Origin: Haliotis rubra
Taxonomy: Eukaryota
Length of the DNA stretch: 64,000 bases
Direction of reading: 5' to 3'
Assembly: GCF_003918875.1 (NCBI RefSeq)
Contig: NW_025764891.1
Span: 4,340,001 to 4,404,000 of the forward strand
Shown: piece after piece, positions 1-59,733 of the stretch
Layout: each line of letters opens with the position of its first letter
Numbering within the stretch: position 1 is the stretch's first letter
Program-made: the position numbers and the translations under genes
The notes under the pieces: model-generated
Seen by the model: the letters and a program-made list of their open reading frames with translations, nothing else
The model's database searches: none
What the model was told of the DNA's origin: nothing

Positions 1-221
1 TTGCCATTCACTCACTCACTTGAACTGATTCGTACATTAACGTTCGCCAAGCTCTGTGGCCGCCTGTGTGAACCGCGCTCCTTCCTTTCTCATCAAACTG
101 TCGTTTTCAAAATTTACCATCGTCTCTCAGTTTGGTGTTTTTCTCTGGTATATTGAATATGGCAGTGTACATATATACGTATCGACGCCAGGTTTGGAGA
201 AGGCATTGCTGTGATAAAGAT

Positions 222-3747: not shown

Positions 3748-5255
3748 TGCGTTAACGATAACCCAACATAGGTACAACATGATGCCATGTTTGGTGTACC
3801 CGACTTTAATACTGATAGAATATTGAATAAAAGACAGGCTCTAGCTACCTCACAAAGAAATACCACTTGACGTGTGACGCAGTTAAAGTACAGAGCGATT
3901 AAAGCGGGGGACCTTTTCGTTTTCCTATTTTCACTTAGAGCCACTTGATGATGAAAGGGGAACGGAAACCTAAACGCGAATGTTATCAAGTGAGCAATTC
4001 TATCCATATTTACATTATATGGCCATAAACATGTTTTCTATTCAAACGGTCAACATTAAAGCCATACTGAAGACTGTCCCCACTTCGACCCCTAAACACA
4101 ACAAGTTGTGTAGATCGCCCGCCATCGCACCATTAATCTCATTCTCTTCCTGCATCAAATGCCATTTATCCCACAAAGAATAATTACAATACAAGCACCC
4201 CTTCGTGTTTTGTCCGTCCCATGGGAACTTTCACTATATGATTCCCTGGGTACTTAACGGTCGTGGAACGTCGACCAATAAAGGAACAATCGGACCACTG
4301 CAGGCGACGTAAAGAGCCCGCCTCATTAACACACGGTACACCTGTTGGCAGCAGTGGGAGACAAGGATTGTCGAAATATATTCTTAGTACCAGGAACGTT
4401 TCTAACTCTACCAGCCCTGATCGAGGGCACCATGCCTTGGTTCAATGACATGGTGGGAGAGAGGATGGCGACGTGGTGGCAGTCAGGCAAGGGTGAGGAT
4501 GTTAAAGGTCAACCACCAGTGACAATGTCGATAAAATCAATGTGCTTTTTGTTCAATGGATCCTACTTATGCTTGCAAAAAAACTTTGAAATTCACAAAT
4601 AATTCAACAAATTTATTGAGGAGCATTATAACTAATACAATTTGTCAGTTTGTGTGAATATGTAATTATTTTTGTTTGTTTTTTTAAAATAAAAAATTGT
4701 TTGAGTTTTCAAACTACGGAACACTGCAGTGGATATTCACACGCTCTCCTGGCAATCTCGACCTTGGAAGACAAGCTAAATATGCCGCGGAAAGTGCATG
4801 AATGCGAGGCCATAATACTTGGCTAATGTTATGTGTTTGTTTTTTTCAGCAAGAAAACACAAACTTCAATTTAAGTTTAATAGAATCAACAATTCAGATA
4901 ACCGCGGAATATATTTAGGACTGTCTTTTTCAGTATTCCACATGTAACACCACCACGGAAAACAAAACCTGTACACGAGTCCACTGACATTTGTGCTTCT
5001 AAATCATCCAACTGTTAAACTTGTATCTGCGATAAAATACCCATGGTCGTGGTAAAACATACTTCTATGTGCTTGAGTGTGAACATATCTGAATTGAAGA
5101 CGCATATGTATCTTATCGAGTCACCCATACATGTAGCAACTGACTGACAGAATATTGTATGGGTACAATTTGTAAGCTGATAGGAGCAAGATTGGGTACA
5201 CATGTTGGTCATTGATTATGTGTATTGTTGATCAACCTATCGATCACTTTGTTTG

Positions 5256-5513
5256 ACCCGTGAAGATCCGGGGTAGAATAGGTCTTCAGCAACCGATGTG
5301 CTTGCCATAAAAAGGCGACTATGCTTGTCGTAAGAGGCGACTAACGGGATCGGGTGGTCAGTTTCGCTGACTTGGTTGACACATGTCATCGTTTCCCAAT
5401 TGCGCAGATCGATGCTCATACTGTTGATCACTGGACTGTCTGGTCCAGACTCGATTATTTACAGACCGCCGCCATATAGCTGGGATATTGCTGAGTGCGG
5501 CGTAAAACTAAAC
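5256..5513 (+). mobile_element. Family B non-tRNA SINE-like retroposon, full length
   Basis: Starts (g)acccgtgaagatcc, ends gcggcgtaaaactaaac. TSD tcactttgtttg at 5244-5255 and 5514-5525. The gtcgtaagaggcgac hairpin is internally duplicated. Confidence 0.85.
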
Positions 5514-5581
5514 TCACTTTGTTTGGCCAAGACTCGCATGTTCACAATTAACCCCTGCAAGTGGCGTGAGGCGAGGTGAAT

Positions 5582-5744
5582 AGTGAGTGAGTATGGATTT
5601 TACGCCGCATTTAGCAATATTCCAGCAATATCATGGCGGGGACACCAGAAACAGGCTTCACACATTGTACCCATGTGGGGATTCGAATCCGGATCTTCAG
5701 CGTAACGAGGAACGCCTTAACGACTAGGCTACCCCACCCACCCC
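5582..5744 (-). mobile_element. SINE family A
   Basis: TSD aggcgaggtgaa. Confidence 0.88.
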
Positions 5745-5869
5745 TAGGCGAGGTGAAATGGAGTTTAGCTACGAGCATCCACTTGGTGTGGCTGCTTGCG
5801 CCAGTCCGGACTGATGTCCGCCTAACACCATGCCGACGTTAACATGGATATCCAACTTAGAAAAGTCAT

Positions 5870-6042: not shown

Positions 6043-6790
6043 AAGGAATCAGTACGAGCACCAGGCAGAGTAACAACAACTACCTCCTTTGACGTCTTTT
6101 GGTATGAGACCGCCGAGAATCGAACCATCGAATTTATACTCGCCGGGAAGGCACTCTTTCCACTAGACTATGTAAAGGTCCAGATGATATAGCTCAGAAT
6201 AGTGATACCTGCGGCGTATAATAGCGTTTGTTCCATCGCAACGTTTAACCTCAACGCATATAAATGTCCAGGGCCACTGCAGGCGGACACTACCCATGTC
6301 GAGGCGGTCAAGTGATAAACGTTTACTGTACACAATCAGGGATTAAGGAGTTTATGGTAATTTGAGGGCGACTGTCTGCTTACAAGGCGTTAATGGCGTG
6401 TTTACGGTGGAGGTGACAAATATCCCAACTGTGTTGCTAAGTCTGGGATTTGAATGGACACGCCTGAGTGAATACCAAATAAAACATGTAGGTGTCATCG
6501 TAAACAACTTTCTCGGGTTACGACCTTAGATGGCATCACGTGACAATACCACGTGATATGATGATGTAAGTAATCATTTGGGATACGCGCATAAATCATG
6601 TTCCTTGTGGGTATCCGGGTGTGGAAACAGTTCCATCAGAAGCGGTCGTAAAATTTTTGAAATATCGATATCACGTGTAACCTGACAACAACATATATCA
6701 ATGATTTACGATGACTTTATGAGAGTGTCATTTTCAATAGCTTGTCTACTGATTTTACAGATTCGTTCATATTAAACCCGTTATTTGTCG

Positions 6791-8122
6791 TCAGCAACCC
6801 ATGTTGGTCGTAAGAGGCGACTAACGGGATCGTGTGGCCAGGCCTGTACAACCCCAATATGTAAAATCAAGACAATATATAAAAACTAACGCAATATGTG
6901 AAAACTTAACGCAAAACGTAAAATATAACACAATATGTAAAAGATTAACGCCAAAAGTTAAAAATGTCTTTAACGCAATATGTCAAAACCTAACGCAAAA
7001 TGTAAAAACAATTTTTAACGCAATTTGTAAAAGTTTAACGGAATCGTAAAATACAACTAGTACTGTTGTTTATTGTTTTGGCGACTTGGTTTAACTTGGA
7101 ATTCTGCTGATATATGTTCTTTTGCATTTTTTTCTTTTTCTTTTCATTGTTTTTGTTGAGAGACCAGTTTTTCTTCAGATTTGTCCTATTTAGTGGTGAA
7201 TTAATAGCAAAACATTTTCCTTTATGGAATTAATGTATTAGTTACTTTTCCTGGTAGTGTGTTTTATAATCTCACTTCAAAATACACAAATGAAATGCAA
7301 CAAATCCTGAGTTTGAGCCATCCCATAGGAATTACGAGAGACTTGGGAATTTGTTCCAGAAACACTTTGAATGAAATTTAGAGAGAATACTATATTTATG
7401 ATGATGTATTTACAAATATTATATTACTCCAAAATGTAGCTATGGTGGTTCAAAATGTAGCTATGGTGGTTCAAGATGCACGCATCTAGGAACTATTCTA
7501 GTATTCCCTTAAACCGCCCATCGTTGTTTCATGTACATAGTCACATCATAACTATTGGCGCTCTCTCCTATATCAGTTGCTAGGTCCGGAGTCCAATGGT
7601 CAGAGCTACCATCTCGATACCAAGTACCAGTTGCAATTAATTCAAACCCCCATACACAATTAATTAAAATTGGAAACATTACTAAAATTGGAAAATAGAC
7701 TATAAGATCGATTAAAATGTCTCTATATACAAGTAAATTATACGTTTATCGACTATGCTTATATGTATACTGAAGGAGGTAAAATTTTGTTAAAAAAGTT
7801 TATTTTGTAAGAAACATTTTGACATCTTAGTTTTTGTAACTAAATTCAATTCTTGCCAAAATTTTCGATTGCCACCCCCATTATTCAAACCTAAAACTGG
7901 ATTGTTTTTACATTTTGTACCTTTTGCGTTAAAGACATCTTTTACATATTGCGTTAATATTTTACATATTGCGTTATTTTTTACGTTTTGCGTTAGTTTT
8001 TACATATTGTTTTGATTTTACATATTGGGGTTGTACAAGGCTCGCTGACATGATTGACACATGTCATCGTATCCCATTTACGTGGATCGATGCTCATGCT
8101 CTTGATCACTGGACTGTCTTGT
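6791..8122 (+). mobile_element. Family B copy split by a MITE (6791-6843 plus 8038-8122)
   Basis: ...gactaacgggatcgtgtggccaggc resumes as aggctcgctgacatgattgacacatgtcatc. Confidence 0.75.
6845..8037. mobile_element. ~1.2 kb MITE/foldback element with long modular TIRs
   Basis: tgtacaaccccaatatgtaaaatcaa at the left and its reverse complement ending at 8037. Arrays of aacgcaa(t/a)atgtaaaa subrepeats at both ends; 3-4 bp (a)ggc target duplication. Confidence 0.8.
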
Positions 8123-22203: not shown

Positions 22204-23092
22204 AACTGACATAGTGGTGACCTGACCTGTAACGTGATACAGCAATATCACGTCATTTTGAAACATCCTTTTCAGTAACCTTTCATAAATGTAGGCAACA
22301 TACACAAATCAGTTAACAACAGACAATAAACTGGTTGAAACTATCACACCTTCCTGTTGTTAATGTTAGTTGAACTTTACTTTCCTGTGCATAATGTAAG
22401 CGAGGGCTTATGTGTTTCGGGCGAATCTGTCCCAGCATATTAGAATTGACCTTGGTAATATGTTTGAAAGGCAGTAAATATAAATACTTTGCCCTGACCG
22501 TGATCCCCGAAACCTATGATCGAACCCTGTACGCTGCAGGCAGCATGTTTATGTGTGGGCATGGCGGGGCATTGACGTGAATGAATATATAAGTTTTATT
22601 TCCGCGATATAATACATCAGCTATGTATTGCCCCACAGTTTGACTCCTGGGGGTTGCCAGGGCGGACCTGACCCACACAAAATTAAAGTTGCTCATTGGC
22701 GTCTCCTTTAGCAGTGAAATGATACCCCGTTTGGATGTTCAACTTCTAATGCTTCACCTTCTAGCGCCTCACCCGCAGCCTGGGTTGTAAACTCCCCAGG
22801 GAGTTGAGAATGAAAACAGTCTGTACACTGATCCATCGACCCGTGTCATAAGCGTGTAAAGCGCTAATGGGCAGCCTTGATGGATTGTTTGTTGTTTAAC
22901 GCCGCACTCAGCAATAGTCCAGCTATACGGCGACGATCTGTAAATAATAGAGTCTGGACCAGATAATCCAGTGATCAACAGCATGAGCATCGATCTACGC
23001 AATTGGAATACGATGACATGTGTCAACCAAGTCAGCGAGCCTGACCACCCGATCCCGTTAGTCGCCTCTTACGACAAGTATGTGTTACTGAA

Positions 23093-23197
23093 GGCTAACT
23101 TCTGTTTTGATTGACTCTTTATGTTCTTCCACTTTTTCTCTACCTCTTCTTTAGATCTGGGATGCAGACCAGCGGAGTTGATGGTTGCTGTAATAAC
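23093..23197 (-). CDS. Harbinger-type Myb/SANT-like protein, exon 2 (truncated)
   Basis: Acceptor tttcattcaactcaacag|, in frame with exon 1: VITATINSAGLHPRSKEEVEKKWKNIKSQSKQKLA (RS..EV.KKW.N.K helix), then runs into family B sequence. Confidence 0.8.
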
Positions 23198-24083: not shown

Positions 24084-24401
24084 ATTTTTCACAATGTATT
24101 ACCGCGGTATCTCAATGTGTCGTCTGCCGTAAATAGCAAAAGGGAGATCCCAACGAAAGCCATTTTCACACCTTTTTATAAAAGAGTTCCGCCGGAAGTC
24201 TAAAAATAACTCGGATTCACCCTAGTGATCACGCGGGTATGCACTACGAAAAAAACTTAGTTTGTCTTTGGAAACTTAGCTAAGTTTCTGACTTAGTAGC
24301 TTTATGAATAGCATCTTAAGTCTCAGACTTAGCTAAGTCAGTTTTAAAAAACTTAAGTTTGGACTTAGGAAAAATCTTAGTTTCTTTATGAATACCGCCC
24401 A

Positions 24402-24510
24402 GGGCCTAGATTTTCGAAGCTCTCTTAGCGCTAAGATAGTCGTAAGTGCCATACATTAACAGTAACTTACGACTATCTTAGCGCTAAGAGAGCTTCGAAA
24501 ATCTAGGCCC
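24402..24510. mobile_element. Palindromic MITE with 46-bp perfect arms
   Basis: gggcctagattttcgaagctctcttagcgctaagatagtcgtaagt (24402-24447) and its exact reverse complement (24465-24510), 17-nt spacer. Confidence 0.85.
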
Positions 24511-25299
24511 AATTCTATAATACTGAGCCAAAGTTTACTTTGACTGGATCTTCACGGGTAGCCTTGATGGAACTCATCGCGATATTTAAACATCATTATC
24601 ATGAATATCATCATTACTGAGATTTCATCATGGATAATTGAAAAACCCTGATATCAACGAAAATGGACTCTTATTGTCTATGCAATGAACGTTAAAAGAT
24701 CAAATTTGACATTTCATTTATATTTTTAAAACTAATACTCCATTTGTTACATCGTGTGAATGCATTTGTGCGTAATTATTTACTGATGCCATGGGAATAT
24801 TGCACAATATTGAATTAACACTTGACATCCAACTACGATTGTCATCCATGGAAAGGAACATTACTACATACAGATATATACTATTCACACTTTGCTAAGG
24901 ATCAAATCATGCATTCAACAGAAAACTATTATGTGGGGTCAAATTTGGTTTAAATACCTAAGCTTATTGTAAGCATGGATCCTTGGTTTCAGTATGTCAT
25001 TGCATCTTGTGGATCCCATACCTGCTATTGACATGTATTGTTTATTTGTCAATGACTCTTTCCATAAATTGCAAAATGGTTGATTGGTGCCATGAAAACC
25101 ATTTTTATGGTTACTCTTGTGTGAAGTGCATAAGGTTAGCTTAGATGACTATTTGCCTAATGAGGGGTTACCTTATTATTATTTATCCAGTTTTAAATGG
25201 ATACAATTTCAAATTATAAATCTACGTTTAAGTAAAGTTGTAAAGTTTTAAGATCCTTAGCAAAGTGTGAGTAGTATAGTTGCCAAATATTGCGCCAAG

Positions 25300-25550
25300 T
25301 GGGCGAGTGAGTGAGTTTAGGTTTACGCCGTACTCAGTAATATTCCAGCTATATGGCGGCGGTCTGTAAATAATCGAGTCTGGACCAGACAATCCAGTGA
25401 TCAACAGCATGAGCATCGATCTGCGCAATTGGGAACCGATGACATGTGTCAACCAGGTCAGAGAGCCTGACCACCCGATCCCGTTAGTCGCCTCTTACGA
25501 CAAGCATGGGTTACTGAAGATCAATATTCTAACCCGGACCTTCACGGGTC
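25300..25550 (-). mobile_element. Family B retroposon, full length
   Basis: 5' GACCCGTGAAGGTCC; TSD tattgcgccaag at 25288-25299 and 25551-25562. Confidence 0.88.
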
Positions 25551-25921
25551 TATTGCGCCAAGAGTAAGTGAATGAGTGACTTCGGTTTGGCGCTGTTTTG
25601 AACAGTATTCCAGATATATCGGGACCTGTCAGCTTTGAGTGGATGGTAACCCATCAGGTATGCAGGACCATATAGACATTAAGACAGACAGTTGATGTAT
25701 TTCTTAACACCAGCTATATCAGTGTGATTTCAGGGCACATCTGCTGGATTTGAGAGGTTGGTGAAACTTATCTGCGATTATAGCGCTGACATCAGAAAAA
25801 CATTATGAACACCGATCTGAGAATCGAACCCACAACCATAGGTTTCTCATACGTCCAGCTATGCACGGCGACGAGTGGGCCACCCTTTCCCCAATGCTAA
25901 TATGGTTGCTTTCGTTTGAAT

Positions 25922-26086
25922 GTGAGTGAGTGAGTTTAGGTTTACGCCACTTTTAGCCATATTCCAGTAATATCACGGCGGGGGACACCAGAAATGGGCT
26001 TCCACATTGCACCTATGTGGTGAATTGAACCCGGGTCTTCGGCGTGGGGAGCGAACACTTTAACCACAAGGCTATCCCAACGCCCT
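25922..26086 (-). mobile_element. SINE family A
   Basis: Consensus match. Confidence 0.85.
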
Positions 26087-29709: not shown

Positions 29710-30060
29710 TGAAGTAAAATGAACGTCATGCCATGGCACACGATGTACGTCCTCATGACGACAGATTGGTTTGCTGTTGTTTTTAGTCATTTGCATGATC
29801 AATATCATGGATACAGATGTATTGTATCGCCCATGCGATTCACGACGTTTTCACAAGTTGACGTCACCCCAATAATAGATGAACGCCACCATGACGACAA
29901 GGGGTCGTTTTCGCTTTGCGTACCACGCATCACATGTATCCAGTACGTTTTCATGATAATAGTCGTGGGGTTTTGGCCTTGCACCACATAACGATACCGT
30001 CAAAGTAACGTCTCCATGACGGCACTACGATTCATCAAGAAAAAATATACTTTTTCTTAC

Positions 30061-31036
30061 CTTTGACGAGTCTGTTGACGTAATCTGGATGTTGGACCAG
30101 GCATTCCAAGCCCAGTTTGGAGTTCATCACCACTTTGATACAAGCCACACATTCAAGGAGAAGCAGGGCATCAGACAGCTGGGTTACCCGTTTACTTCCA
30201 AGGGTGTCCACACAGTCCAGCAGTGCGTCCAGACCTTTGGCGTCCAGGAATCCTTGCATCCATTCTTTCCCACTGGACTTTACCTTCTTCTTCAAAGCAC
30301 CGAACGTGTTCACAGACGGTAGTTTTAACACACTCACACAAATCTCAGGATCACACTGCTCCAAATCAATATTCATCAACGTCGCGCTTATTTTTCGACG
30401 AAGTATGTGTTTAATTCCCTTTTTAGGCTTTTGATTTTCTTTTTCAGATCCTGTTCCATGTTCCGAATCAACAGAGCTCTCACTGTACATTTCGTTCAGT
30501 AACAAACTCGCTTCTTTCTCCGATATGGTCTCCAAGTGACTCAAGCTTGAGGTTTGGGAGTCGCCAGAGTCGGTCAATTCACTTTCTTTCGAGCCTGTCT
30601 GTGCAAATTTAGTATCCGCGCCCTCACGTTTGCTGTCGCCTGAAGCTTGTGATGCAAGCAAAGTCACATTGTCGTCTCCACAAGACGGCGAACTGTTTAA
30701 CTTAGCCATATCACTACCTTTCAGTGTTTCCTCCTCTCGCACGTGAGATTCAACGCTGGACTTGTTGGTATGGATCGTGTCGTCTGCTACTGAGGCGTCC
30801 GCCATGTCTTCTGAGTGCGCGTGACGGTCACGGCTGAGTAGCACAGCTTGATCCGTCGCTCTGTTATTTATAGTTTGTTTCACGGAACTAACCTCGGCAT
30901 GTTTCGTCTCATCCTCTCTGTCTTTCCTTCCTTTCTTTTTCCTCCCAGATTTGGGGCTCTTTTTGTCTTTTTCTCTGGGAGCCGAGCGACGGGACCCCCA
31001 CACCAAGTTGGACACCCGTCTGAACAGGCTCGACAT
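30061..31036 (-). CDS. INF2: First coding exon of an inverted formin-2-like gene (N-terminal extension plus first half of DID/GBD-FH3 domain), intact copy
   Basis: Acceptor ttgtttcag|G at 31048, ATG at 31036, 325 codons plus 1 nt to donor AAG|gtaaga at 30061 (phase 1). DPEICVSVLKLPSVNTFGALKKKVKSSGKEWMQGFLDAKGLDALLDC...SDALLLLECVACIKVVMNSKLGLECL aligns without gaps to human INF2 as recalled ([47 protein letters not shown]...[26 protein letters not shown]). Downstream exons were not found in the window. Confidence 0.88.
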
Positions 31037-31208
31037 GTTGGACCAAACCTGAAACAATATTACGTTTAAATGACACATTTTTTTTCCATATAGGAAAATT
31101 ATCAGCATTGTCATCCATCGTCCAAACATCAGATAAAACCAACTCAGGCATTCATGTTGTGCTAAGCAGACTGGCCATGACGATGGAATTTCAGCTATGA
31201 CTACTCAC

Positions 31209-37744: not shown

Positions 37745-37948
37745 TTTGTTTGTTTATTCCTTAACCGGTCTGTTAATCATCTGGACCAGACAATCCGGTG
37801 ATGAACATCGTGAGCATCGATCTACGCAATTTGGGTACGATGACATGTGTCAACCAAGTCAGCGAGCCTGACCACCCGATCCCGTTAGTCGCCTCTTACG
37901 ACAAGCATGGGTTACTGAAGACCAATTCCAACCCGGATCTTCACGGGC
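37745..37948 (-). mobile_element. Family B retroposon (3' part degenerate)
   Basis: gcccgtgaagatccgggttggaattggtcttcagtaacccatgcttgtcgtaagaggcgactaacggg on the minus strand. Confidence 0.8.
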
Positions 37949-40293
37949 ACACCTTACTACAAGGATATAGAACAGAAAAGTGAAAAGACGAATAATTTAC
38001 AGAACTTTATAAAAATACAAACGAAACATCCTAATACTTATCTCTGCATAATACTTATAATTAGACAATTATCGACGATACAAATAAACAATGCCTTACA
38101 GAATGGTATATGATATGCGCCCGAAGAATCCGTTAGAAGTTTAAACATTAACGGCGAGTGTGATCCCCTCGCAAACTTCATCAGAAAATCAGATCGTATC
38201 TTCCACTAAGGTAACAAAAGCAGCTTGTTTAAAGGACAATCTACAGATGAGAATTACTCTTCGATTGGATAAGCTTTAAACGAGGCCAACAATAAATATT
38301 ATCACACGATACTGCCAGTGTACATTTGACGCCTTGATCCTTCGCACAGGAAACTATTCACATGGGGAAACAAAGAAGGGCCTTCGAGCGTTGTAGACTG
38401 TTTAAAATCGAACCTAAGTCATCGGCGTGACGATCTCACGCTTTAACCGCTTGGCTACCACGTATTATAGCGTTAAGTCGTATTTAATCGCTTATTTTTT
38501 AAGAGATAAAAGTGCACCATACCAATGATGTTGTTTGTGCATAAATATTAGTCTGTCGATCTGGTAAGATTTGTTTGTTTGTTTGTTTATTTGTTGCTTG
38601 TTTGTTTGTTTGTTGCTGTTTGTTGTTAAGCAAGACCCCATCCGTGTAGTGGGGCCACGAAATTAATTGAATCTGGACCTGACCAATCCTTGAATACAAC
38701 GTTGTCAGGGTATGATAACACGTGATCAACGTAAACTAAGTAAAACACCGTAGCAGTCTGACTCATGCAGTTGATCACTGGATTGTCTGGCCCAGTATCG
38801 ATTATTTAAAGACCGATACCATATGGCTGGAATATTGCTGAGTGCGACGTTAAACAATAAACAAACATATGTTATCGGAACCTTTTCTTGATTCTAATTG
38901 ATCTACTTTAGAATATAACCGAGTTTCTGTCTCAAATTTATATTATATTTGGTTTCTCTTGGCCAGACATGACTTAATATTGTTAGTGACTCGGATCACT
39001 ATTGTTTTGCAGGTGTCGTTAATCGTCAGCGCTCCTGGTTTCAACTTCAAGGTGAATTTTTAAACTTTTTAGGTATATTTTACCGAACCTAAGGTTAATC
39101 GATCGAAGCTCTTTAAATGTAAGTTAAGAGGTTATTGCGACCTCCCAAATTGAGTTTAAACATCACCGCCAGATGTCGCTCTCAACGTCACCTGGCGTCA
39201 CTACTCCAAATACAGGGATCGGTAATCGATGCTAACAGGGACTTAAAGGATGAAAGGCGATTTGTTTACATTTTCAAATAATCCATGTAAGATTTAAAGC
39301 TTTATAAATAATGGTAACAGATGATAGCATTACTGAAAGTTATCATAAAAAATATTACAGAAATGTAATGTCACGTTTTGAACATTTACCATAGTTCGGT
39401 TTTCTATCTTCGTTGTTAAAACTGAATAAAAAGACAAAGGACAAATGTAATCAAATTACCATTTCTTCATTTCGGGCGTCATCAGAAAACATAGAAAATA
39501 CATGTTCATTACACGAAGCGCAAAAAGAATCTTCACTGACAAAAGTGATAGAGTAAGTCATTCTACTGACACGTCGAGGAACATTTGCCCATGGTTACAA
39601 CACAGCGTCTCCCTCGGTGTAACTCCCCTGTCAATATCACTACGTGTATCTATAACACAAGACCTTTCCTGATCCCCTGCTATGTACGTAATTCATTAAT
39701 GTGTTTCCTGAAACTTTTCCTTTCAATCCGAAGCTGACAACATCGACGTATAAATCAGTGCTAAAAGGTCCGTCCTGAGAGTAATCACATTTCGGTATTG
39801 ATTTATGGTCTAAGGGAGTTAACCCTTGTTGACCCAATGAAGATTATGTTTGCTTCATTTTATACGACTACTTACAGGGTAAGAGTTGACTCCAGCAAAG
39901 TCAAGGTGATTGTACCAATTTTGGAAACATTTACAAACGGAACTCAAAAATATCATATAAAAATATCATTTGAGAAGTGGTATTGGATGAAACATGTCAG
40001 ACAAATGATATTTGTAAATAAATCCGAATGATAGAAAACATTATTCTTTTGACTACGCTCTACACTGTTAAAGAAAATGTTAGTATTTTTGATATACAGT
40101 AAACATAGCGCTACGATGATTTAGGAGCATGTGTACAATAATACGTTTTTTCTATCTCATGAATTTTTTATATAAAATACGGCACAAAAAGAACTTAAAA
40201 CAAAATCAATATTTTAATGATTATGACTTATAAGCGCTGCTTAATACACGAGAACGTTTCAGTATGGGTAAGGGCATGTTCTCAGCTGAAAAT

Positions 40294-51789: not shown

Positions 51790-51951
51790 GGGGCTGTGTG
51801 GTAGCCTAGTGGTTAAGGCGTCCGCTCGTCAAGCCGAAGACCCGGGTTCTATTCCCCACATGGGTACAATGTGTGAAGCCCATTTCTGGTGTCCCACGCC
51901 ATGATATTGCTGGAATATTGCTAAATGCGGCGTAAAACCATAACCACTCAC
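51790..51951 (+). mobile_element. SINE family A
   Basis: Consensus match. Confidence 0.85.
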
Positions 51952-52564
51952 TGGAGATATTTCATCCCTATCAAACGTTGAGTGGTATAAACAGGAATGT
52001 GTGTACGTTTAATGAAGTGGGATAATATCAGTGATTCGAAAGTTAATTGGTGTATGGGTGGTCAGGGTGGATTGTCTGTCCCTTAGGGATGTATTGGTGG
52101 GAAGAGGAGGCCTGTGTCAGCTCATATCCACATACCTATATCATAGATATACAAAATACGACGGAGTGTGAATCAAAATCACAGGAAGCTTGACCTTCCT
52201 CCGGAATAGAGTAGCTGAGTGGACACGCGGGATGAGGAGCTGAGATTTACATGGTAATACAGGTTCACTGCATGTCACATTCAGTGTGAGGAGAATGGCT
52301 GCCCTGTGTCTGTGACTGGCTGGGTTATATATGGTGTATATGAGTAGTCCGCCTTGACATGGGATGGAGTCAAGGAAATGACCCGTCATTGTTTCCGACC
52401 TGGGTCAGTAGTGTTTAGCTGCGAACCGTGAGTCAGATGGAGACAGTCACATTCATCACATCGGGCATGTCAGATAGGTGCCACGTATTACACACTAACA
52501 GCCTGTACATCAAAGGCTGGCAGTGACGGGAGGACATGTATATAGCGCTTGCATGTATACCTCA

Positions 52565-59490: not shown

Positions 59491-59733
59491 AGTGAGTGAG
59501 TGAGTTTAGTTTTACGCCGCAGTCAGCAATATTCCAGCTATGTGGTCTGTAAATAATCGAGTCTGGACCAGACAATCCAGTGATCAACAGCATGAGCAAC
59601 GATCTGCGCAATTGGGAACCGATGACATGTGTCAACCAAGTCAGCGAGCCTGACCACCCGATCCCGTTAGTCGCCTCTTACGAAAAGCATGGGTTACTGA
59701 AGATCAATATTTTAATCCGGACCTTGACGGGTA
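59491..59733 (-). mobile_element. Family B retroposon, full length
   Basis: Same consensus; TSD ctgggc(t/g)gaagg at 59479-59490 and 59734-59745. Confidence 0.85.

Follow-up and report, generated by a model that had tools for sequence, protein, structure and literature searches.

A covariation-supported RNA module at the 5′ end of an abalone retroposon recurs in other retroposon families and in the 3′ untranslated regions of RNA viruses

What sets the 5′ end of a retroposon whose copies begin at one and the same point and that has no small-RNA promoter? The question is raised by a 64,000-nt stretch of the genome of the abalone Haliotis rubra (contig NW_025764891.1, positions 4,340,001–4,404,000 of the forward strand; hereafter the window), which holds copies of family B, a ~246-bp retroposon resembling a short interspersed element (SINE) and in which a variable first base leads into a head module, then a body and finally a tail of ACTAAA(CTCA)n. 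A sequence-only reading of the window had proposed that this head folds into an H-type pseudoknot followed by a hairpin and might be a new self-cleaving or 5′-processing RNA. Here, compensatory changes between families indicate that the head is an RNA structure under selection, and a self-contained, portable module of ~75–80 nt is well supported. Comparison of its many versions shows it to be portable between SINEs, long interspersed elements (LINEs) and positive-sense single-stranded RNA (+ssRNA) viruses.

The copy that raised the question lies on the minus strand and has its 5′ end at 25550. It starts with a single G followed by ACCCG, and its 3′ end consists of ACTAAA and (CTCA)n, closing with GCCCA(C). 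The element, its flanks and the parts of its head, with helices numbered P1 to P4, are as follows.

25300–25550, minus: full family-B copy (nhmmer profile positions 2–246, 309 bits)
25551–25562, minus: 5′ target-site duplication CTTGGCGCAATA, the same 12 bases occurring again at 25288–25299
25288–25299, minus: 3′ target-site duplication CTTGGCGCAATA, giving the 12-bp direct repeat that flanks the copy
25475–25550, minus: head module (probable LP-type head, see below); covariance model R1, 58 bits, E 2e-12
25545–25549, minus: P1 5′ strand ACCCG, the likely pseudoknot stem, beginning with the first templated base; its extension covaries from family to family
25537–25543, minus: P2 5′ strand GAAGGUC; 7/7 pairs change on both sides across families, 84% of cells paired
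25532–25536, minus: P1 3′ strand CGGGU, providing the opening bases of the P2 loop
25523–25531, minus: A-rich loop UAGAAUAUU with the near-invariant AGAAU(A); the A/G/A/A/T columns are invariant or at least 90% conserved in 30 diverse sequences
25516–25522, minus: P2 3′ strand GAUCUUC
25508–25510, minus: P3 5′ strand CCC, short in family B and 5–6 bp in other families; 5/5 pairs change on both sides
25487–25501, minus: P4 hairpin GUCG-UAAGAGG-CGAC, an exact 15-mer common to metagenome retroposons and four RNA viruses
25480–25482, minus: P3 3′ strand GGG

The evidence for this fold comes from two alignments. A1 comprises 30 diverse sequences and yielded model R1, built from the nested helices P2, P3 and P4 only, while A2 comprises 99 hits aligned to R1, with P1 left out of the model. 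In A2, 84.8% of cells form standard pairs, compared with 31–47% when the partners are slid by 1–3 columns, and the covariation score of 0.229 stands against 0.108 ± 0.006 in shuffled alignments (0 of 500 reach it) and 0.044–0.067 in the slid controls. Changes on both sides affect 7/7 pairs of P2 and 5/5 pairs of P3. Thirteen distinct P2 helices are fully paired, such as GAAGAUC/GAUCUUC, GUGGGUU/GACCCAC, GUGAUGG/CCAUCAC and GUAGCAC/GUGCUAC, as are ten distinct P3 helices, among them CCUGG/CCAGG and its flipped form CCAGG/CCUGG. A2 was fitted to P2–P4, so that its pair counts lean towards the model; the covariation result is robust despite this, given how the slid controls behave and how many different helices occur. 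P3 encloses P4 through an internal loop, and P4, whose 15-mer was the search key, is invariant in A2. P1 pairs in 68.8% of cells, its outer pair being CG, GC, UG, AU or UA, and its family-specific extensions and variants are complementary: GCCCCG/CGGGGC, UCCCG/CGGGA, ACCCG/CGGGU (this genome), GCCG/CGGC and, in two viruses, CGCCC/GGGCG. We regard P2, P3 and P4 as established by these comparisons and P1 as likely, so the 5′ part of the head is likely to be a compact H-type pseudoknot with a first loop of 1–2 nt and an A-rich third loop containing AGAAUA.

Much of the originally proposed fold is thus upheld across ~100 sequences, namely P2 and P3, the CCC/GGG stem around the invariant hairpin, with weaker support for P1. 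The variants of the second stem noted within the window do keep their pairing, yet they involve only A-U/G-U/U-G wobble; compensatory change is found only between families. Throughout the abalone genome, differences between sub-families in P2 are likewise single transitions to G-U pairs, which are weak evidence: covariation within the genome is weak because these changes are wobble only and the copies are young (93–96% identity). No Rfam 15 family matches any version of the module, a check that the sequence-only reading had proposed together with the covariation analysis.

Across the genome, the 5′ end of family B is as fixed as it appeared in the window. A BLAST search of the assembly (1.38 Gb, 2855 contigs) gave 40 scored hits, all of which (40/40) begin at query position 1–2, with identities of 91–96%. 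In an unbiased genome sample of 264 kb, a profile search with nhmmer recovered ~54 copies, 19–22 of which (~40%) begin at profile position 2–6; the remainder are 5′-truncated at scattered positions, as is expected of LINE-mediated copying. Among 34 full copies the first base is G in 13, T in 10, A in 7 and C in 4; it lies outside the target duplication and ACCCG follows in nearly all. Target duplications of 8–14 bp, judged by eye, flank about 20 or more of the 34. At ~1 copy per 5 kb of the sample, family B would perhaps amount to roughly 10^5 copies, a few percent of the genome. It is also contained in assembled sequencing contigs of three coded organisms.

The module extends well beyond this family. 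An exact scan of JGI metagenome contigs for the hairpin 15-mer GTCGTAAGAGGCGAC returned at least 120 loci, with many chance hits expected; this wider sample is anchored on that one 15-mer, and variation in P4 lies outside its view. Among the matches listed, ~95 show the same architecture on both sides of the 15-mer, most of them from a small number of host-associated series of samples: (N)CCCG, U(G), stem a, CGGG, ..(U)AGAAUA, stem a′, a linker, stem b, a 4–6-nt loop, the hairpin, UAA(A) and stem b′. These loci represent many families with unrelated bodies. Within each family, copies become similar from the initial base of the CCCG strand onwards, and therefore the module is 5′-terminal in the metagenome families also. 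The loop just before AGAAUA carries insertions of up to ~60 nt in some families, and runs of T4–T7 lie inside or just after the module in several. RNA polymerase III (Pol III) would not read through such runs, which argues against transcription by this enzyme. In four metagenome contigs (L136:740–900, L096, L150 and L153) the module leads directly into a tRNA-like segment (GGUAGUCUAGUGGUAA...), forming a composite head; in pectinid SINEs, too, the head is described as placed upstream of a tRNA-like part (PMC4758252).

A LINE bears the module as well, in keeping with a 5′ untranslated region (UTR) position. On metagenome contig L205 the module (4698–4786, 68 bits) stands at the start of the element, ~235 nt upstream of a 273-aa ORF1-like frame (5021–5842), and is followed by an open reading frame (ORF) with an Exo_endo_phos_2 (endonuclease-reverse transcriptase) domain at 7052–7762; the LINE as a whole sits in an animal gene region. 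A second copy of this LINE family, on contig L152, has an unrelated upstream flank, which places the module at the 5′ end of the LINE, as is stated for other LINEs in the relevant passages of PMC4758252. Apart from the L154/L205 LINE, the ORFs downstream of modules in metagenome contigs showed no LINE domains.

Beyond retroposons, we scanned IMG/VR and found the 15-mer in 31 contigs, in most of them by chance. The full architecture is present in five, which represent four distinct +ssRNA viruses.

L070: RdRP_3 and a nodavirus-type capsid
L075: RdRP_3
L060 and L073, the same virus from two samples: tetravirus-type capsid (Peptidase_A21)
L054: coat S-domain protein; two tandem module copies

All viral modules are in coding-strand orientation and located 30–130 nt from the 3′ end of the contig, downstream of its final ORF. 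The tandem copies of L054 differ in their P2 stems, and both stems pair. Model R2 draws solely on non-viral sequences and, within them, on the stretch upstream of the 15-mer alone, so that it does not depend on the search key; applied to 251 kb of the 31 contigs, it gave exactly three hits, the two L054 copies (E 2e-7 and 3e-6) and L075 (5e-4), each where expected. For L060/L073 and L070 the case consists of an exact match to the 15-mer, the spacing of AGAAUA and complementarity in P1 and P2. Chimeric assembly is unlikely, since four viruses from five samples carry the module in the same orientation and place, each with its own compensated stems. No Rfam family matches any of the viral module regions, and a second viral scan with a looser pattern recovered no further viruses. 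The L054 pair occupies positions 1–152 (minus) in the 3′ UTR of a 6.1-kb contig, which also has a 1217-aa ORF without a Pfam match.

Is the abalone element new? We are highly confident that this stretch belongs to a very abundant LP-type SINE and forms its head, derived from a LINE rather than from a tRNA, and that it has the fold described above. Matetovici et al. (2016, Genome Biol Evol, PMC4758252) report LP-SINEs from Littorina, Haliotis diversicolor and H. midae, Ostrea, Saccostrea and pectinids; in their account these elements are flanked by target-site duplications and end in tandem repeats, ACTAAA is one of two hexamers before the tail repeats in Haliotis and Ostrea, and their initial ~70 bp share homology with the extreme start of the 5′ UTR in LINEs from two clades (Nimb-17_LMi, I-3_DR and RTE-9_CPB). 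Family B is likewise short and non-autonomous, with target duplications of variable size (9–13 bp), a 3′-terminal (CTCA)n and, in its consensus, the ACTAAA hexamer before the repeats, and its module also stands at the start of a LINE. Its head shows no tRNA, 5S or 7SL derivation: Rfam 15 has no match to either strand of the element at E ≤ 10 (tRNA, 5S and ribozyme families included), and ARAGORN finds no tRNA in it. This agrees with the original claim that the head has neither a tRNA nor a 5S origin, and together with the T4–T7 runs of related families and the absence of a tRNA-like fold it sets the head apart from tRNA-derived heads with Pol III type 2 promoters. What tells against the assignment is that it depends on matching features, the published sequences being given in figures and the comparison with Nimb-17_LMi, I-3_DR and RTE-9_CPB having been made by description alone.

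The supposed novelty of the element is therefore lost, for it was already published in 2016 as an LP-SINE with a LINE-derived head, and both promoter and ribozyme roles were raised then. In the passages concerned, the authors argue for a promoter from position alone, citing the promoter/ribozyme precedent of L1Tc, and treat the head as a putative sequence-level promoter, with no fold, covariation or RNA viruses brought in (PMC4758252). A literature follow-up on LP-SINEs yielded only this paper, and a search with the hairpin sequence yielded nothing relevant. As far as our searches reach, what is new is the covariation-backed fold, its spread over many retroposon families and, above all, its presence in the 3′ UTRs of RNA viruses.

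Family B shares its last ~58 nt, including the ACTAAA-type tail and (CTCA)n, with family A, an even more abundant tRNA-headed SINE; the Saccostrea LP-SINE is similarly described as sharing body and tail with tRNA-headed SINEs (PMC4758252). In the 264-kb sample, ~75 hits cover only these last ~58 nt of family B and belong to family A. Family A lies in the window at 25924–26080 (minus) and 51795–51955 (plus), and at ~40 further places; the sole hit of the window above an Rfam gathering threshold, a tRNA at 51795–51863, is a family-A head. We also considered a tRNA or B-box origin for the family-B head. The candidate motif GGUUAGAAUA matches only 8/11 of the B-box consensus and resembles the T-arm region of family A; with no A box at the right distance, no match to a tRNA model and the motif kept in RNA viruses, this reading was rejected. 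The only LINE in the sampled abalone DNA (L039:3740–6750, minus; RVT_1 domain) is split by a family-A SINE, has a different, (TACATTATTG)n tail and no head module, and is not the partner of families A and B.

Tandem arrangements of the head bear on how its end is copied. At L018:1–1500, ~30 units of 50–51 bp (head positions 2–52) stand in tandem directly upstream of a full family-B copy, while the paralogous L030:1750–1800 has ~1.5 heads only. Contigs of sequencing runs X1 and X15 show the same 51-base step-back junction, with 1–3 variable letters between heads. The arrays look as if the reverse transcriptase had jumped templates at the RNA 5′ end, with later amplification. The variable junction letters of 1–3 nt, together with the variable first base of the copies, would fit untemplated addition by the reverse transcriptase at the end of the RNA. 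At L014:1260–1745 two family-B copies lie head to head with their 5′ ends touching.

What, then, could the module do? Our leading reading, to which we give a probability of about 0.4, is that it acts at the RNA level to fix or protect the 5′ end, standing in for cap-type functions. The 5′ end of the retroposon RNA coincides with the first base of P1. In the proposed scheme the module would work as RNA, not as a DNA promoter, from the extreme 5′ end; it would block 5′–3′ exonucleases or signal an exact processing cut, so that transcripts begun anywhere upstream would end up as RNAs starting exactly at P1. The reverse transcriptase of the partner LINE would copy the RNA to that end and add 1–3 untemplated bases, and in viruses a copy located in the 3′ UTR would shield or flag the genome's 3′ part. 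A core function at the RNA level is suggested because RNA viruses keep the module. Such a role would account for the precision of the 5′ termini across many independent families, for the tandem viral copies and for the independence from any promoter.

Exonuclease-resistant RNAs (xrRNAs) of flaviviruses and of Tombusviridae/Luteoviridae offer the nearest viral comparison: they too are compact pseudoknots in viral 3′ UTRs, are often tandem and define a protected RNA 5′ end whatever the context, and a pseudoknotted viral 3′ UTR fold, with a tandem pair in L054, is also what we find. They differ in showing no sequence or Rfam similarity to the abalone module, whose fold is preceded by 0–1 base only. 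Literature searches found no xrRNA in retroposons and no link between xrRNAs or viruses and retroposons. The s2m element is a mobile stem-loop of viral 3′ UTRs whose function is not settled. Like the present module it is conserved and mobile between unrelated +ssRNA viruses (coronaviruses, astroviruses, picornaviruses and caliciviruses); unlike s2m, the abalone-type module has its main reservoir at retroposon 5′ ends, sequence and fold are unrelated, and the s2m model of Rfam matches none of the module versions.

Several observations weigh against an end-defining role or the fold behind it. The evidence on function is of sequence only, the sequencing runs being assembled contigs. Known xrRNAs form a ring around the 5′ end, halt Xrn1 and usually have a few unpaired bases upstream of the block; only 0–1 base precedes P1, which fits an exact cut or a transcription start better than stalling. 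Support for P1 is weaker than for P2 and P3, since sliding its partner by −1 scores equally well, as P1 consists of runs of C and G. The invariance of the 15-mer is due in part to its use as the search key, the single-sequence fold is no more stable than that of shuffled sequence (z = −0.6), and the viral copies in L060/L073 and L070, which are too divergent, were missed by the independent model R2.

The exactness of the 5′ end would also be accounted for if the head were an internal 'LINE promoter', the source of the name LP-SINE, in which the DNA of the first ~70 bp places RNA polymerase II at the first base. Internal promoters are known from jockey- and I-type elements, and L1Tc Pr77 is reportedly both promoter and ribozyme; a start with 0–1 extra base fits transcription initiation, and LINEs and SINEs both carry the head at their exact 5′ end, the ground on which PMC4758252 proposes this role. 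Yet covariation in the stems goes along with free sequence change, so what is selected is RNA pairing; large loop insertions are tolerated; tRNA-type boxes are absent and the T-runs exclude Pol III. The module is also retained in RNA viruses, which have no DNA stage. We consider a pure DNA promoter improbable for this last reason, with a dual role that includes a promoter conceivable. The module may instead recruit a host translation factor or ribosome, as viral 3′ cap-independent translation elements do, or another RNA-binding protein or LINE proteins, its terminal position in retroposons being a by-product of head capture. Its sites, the 5′ UTRs of LINEs and the 3′ UTRs of tombus/noda-like viruses, are those at which cap-independent translation elements operate, and its loops AGAAUA and UAAGAGG are identical from viruses to molluscs, suggesting a conserved ligand. 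Alu RNA reaches nascent LINE protein through SRP9/14, and a ribosome- or factor-bound SINE RNA could do so in a similar way. We rank binding of this kind second to the end-defining role, which like it would suit retroposons and viruses alike, and still think it rather unlikely: SINEs encode nothing, no translation-element family of Rfam matches, and it would leave unexplained the common start, within one base of P1, of SINE and LINE families that are independent of each other.

A new self-cleaving ribozyme cutting just 5′ of P1 was the lead suggestion of the sequence-only reading, and it too predicts an exact end at the first base of P1; it might be a rearranged relative of ribozymes like that of hepatitis delta virus (HDV). 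HDV-like ribozymes are known from the 5′ ends of LINEs (Ruminski et al. 2011, cited in PMC5786205). They and L1Tc Pr77 resemble the abalone head in forming a ~70–80-nt module at the exact 5′ end of non-LTR (long terminal repeat) retroposons and their non-autonomous derivatives, with the 5′ terminus pseudoknotted to an internal strand; on a reading of the sequence, the order P1-P2-P1′-(insert-tolerant A-rich joiner ...AGAA...)-P2′ mirrors the HDV-like P1-P2-...-P1′-P4-J4/2-P2′. The likeness goes no further than this topology. With 0–1 nt between P2a and P1b there is no nested double pseudoknot; P3/L3 (between P2 and P1′) and P1.1 are missing, and the joiner, (U)AGAAUA in all families, has no conserved C at the site of the catalytic C. 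In addition, the module carries a further conserved domain on its 3′ side (P3/P4) and is found in the 3′ UTRs of viruses. Threading by eye onto HDV-like, pistol and twister folds gave a resemblance in the P1/P2 order of HDV only, with the core absent. As the original reading had found on comparing consensus folds, no known ribozyme fits: no Rfam ribozyme model matches any abalone, metagenome or viral version, and hammerhead, twister, twister-sister, pistol, hatchet and hairpin models gave no match at E ≤ 0.5–10. New ribozyme classes are rare, and a cut 5′ of the module would sever the linear +ssRNA virus genome from its 3′ end, which makes self-cleavage less likely; an exonuclease block would suit the viral context better. 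We hold the ribozyme to be distinctly improbable. Very improbable indeed is a decayed remnant, in which the head would retain just a single helix from the HDV-like ribozyme of the partner LINE and imitate that LINE's 5′ end. The HDV-like P1/P2 topology and the LINE derivation of the head speak for it, but the helices are kept by compensatory change in many families and viruses, as in a complete selected unit, and the L205 LINE carries the same module with no HDV-like match in Rfam at E ≤ 0.5.

The window contains further remains of family B, and its hairpin motif GTCGTAAGAGGCGACTAA occurs there 6 times against 0.04 expected.

5255–5518, plus: family-B copy of a sub-family in which 22 nt of the hairpin region are duplicated; flanked by a target duplication, ~CTTTGTTTG, of ~10 bp
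37766–37949, minus: family-B copy of an older sub-family (GAAGAUC/GGUCUUC), 3′ part rearranged; covariance model, 59 bits
59494–59733, minus: family-B copy with a 13-bp target duplication containing 1 mismatch
22885–23098, minus: 5′-truncated family-B copy without the pseudoknot part
6775–6844, plus: head fragment adjoining another repeat family
24543–24559, minus: 17-nt fragment of the head start beside a palindromic insert, undetected by nhmmer

Five copies had been credited with a common start. Four have it, with one variable base followed by (A/G)CCCG, at 25550 (minus), 5256 (plus), 37949 (minus) and 59733 (minus); the fifth, at 24559, is the 17-nt head fragment only, and the truncated copy at 23098 (minus) and the fragment at 6775–6844 (plus) had been overlooked. 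Nor do four copies abut a 12-bp target duplication: three duplications are clear, of 12 bp at 25550, ~10 bp at 5256 and 13 bp with 1 mismatch at 59733. The 22-nt tandem duplication, which covers the region just before and including the hairpin (window 5290–5330), defines a sub-family also seen at L022:653 and at L048:8136 and 9742, in which the first copy has a different loop, GCC-ACAAAA-GGC. A near-perfect long palindrome at ~24400–24530, a foldback like those of miniature inverted-repeat transposable elements, adjoins the 17-nt fragment at 24559. The head fragment on the plus strand is abutted by a ~245-bp interspersed repeat (6841–7086, plus) with internal TAACGCAAnATGTAAAA units, which has more than 40 genome copies at 87–94% identity. 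An open frame at 30035–31129 (minus) encodes a Diaphanous GTPase-binding domain (Drf_GBD, E 2e-10), and the window probably lies in a formin-like gene whose introns hold the retroposons.

For the question raised in 2016, how a retroposon obtains a defined 5′ end without a small-RNA promoter, the covariation-backed fold supplies a concrete object to test, and its occurrence in viral 3′ UTRs shifts the debate from promoter to RNA structure. The module further connects the biology of retroposons with viral UTR elements, among them xrRNAs, 3′ translation elements and s2m. Were it able to set or protect RNA ends alone, it would be a compact tool for stabilising uncapped RNAs. More tentatively, and with some doubt, it may represent a portable RNA element of a new class that passes between +ssRNA viruses and non-LTR retroposons and that both sets and shields a 5′ end by its fold alone, through exonuclease stalling or an exact cut made by itself or by an enzyme. 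If this is true, LINEs and SINEs could travel on any transcript of the host and would need no promoter themselves, and the module would be the first retrotransposon counterpart of viral xrRNAs.

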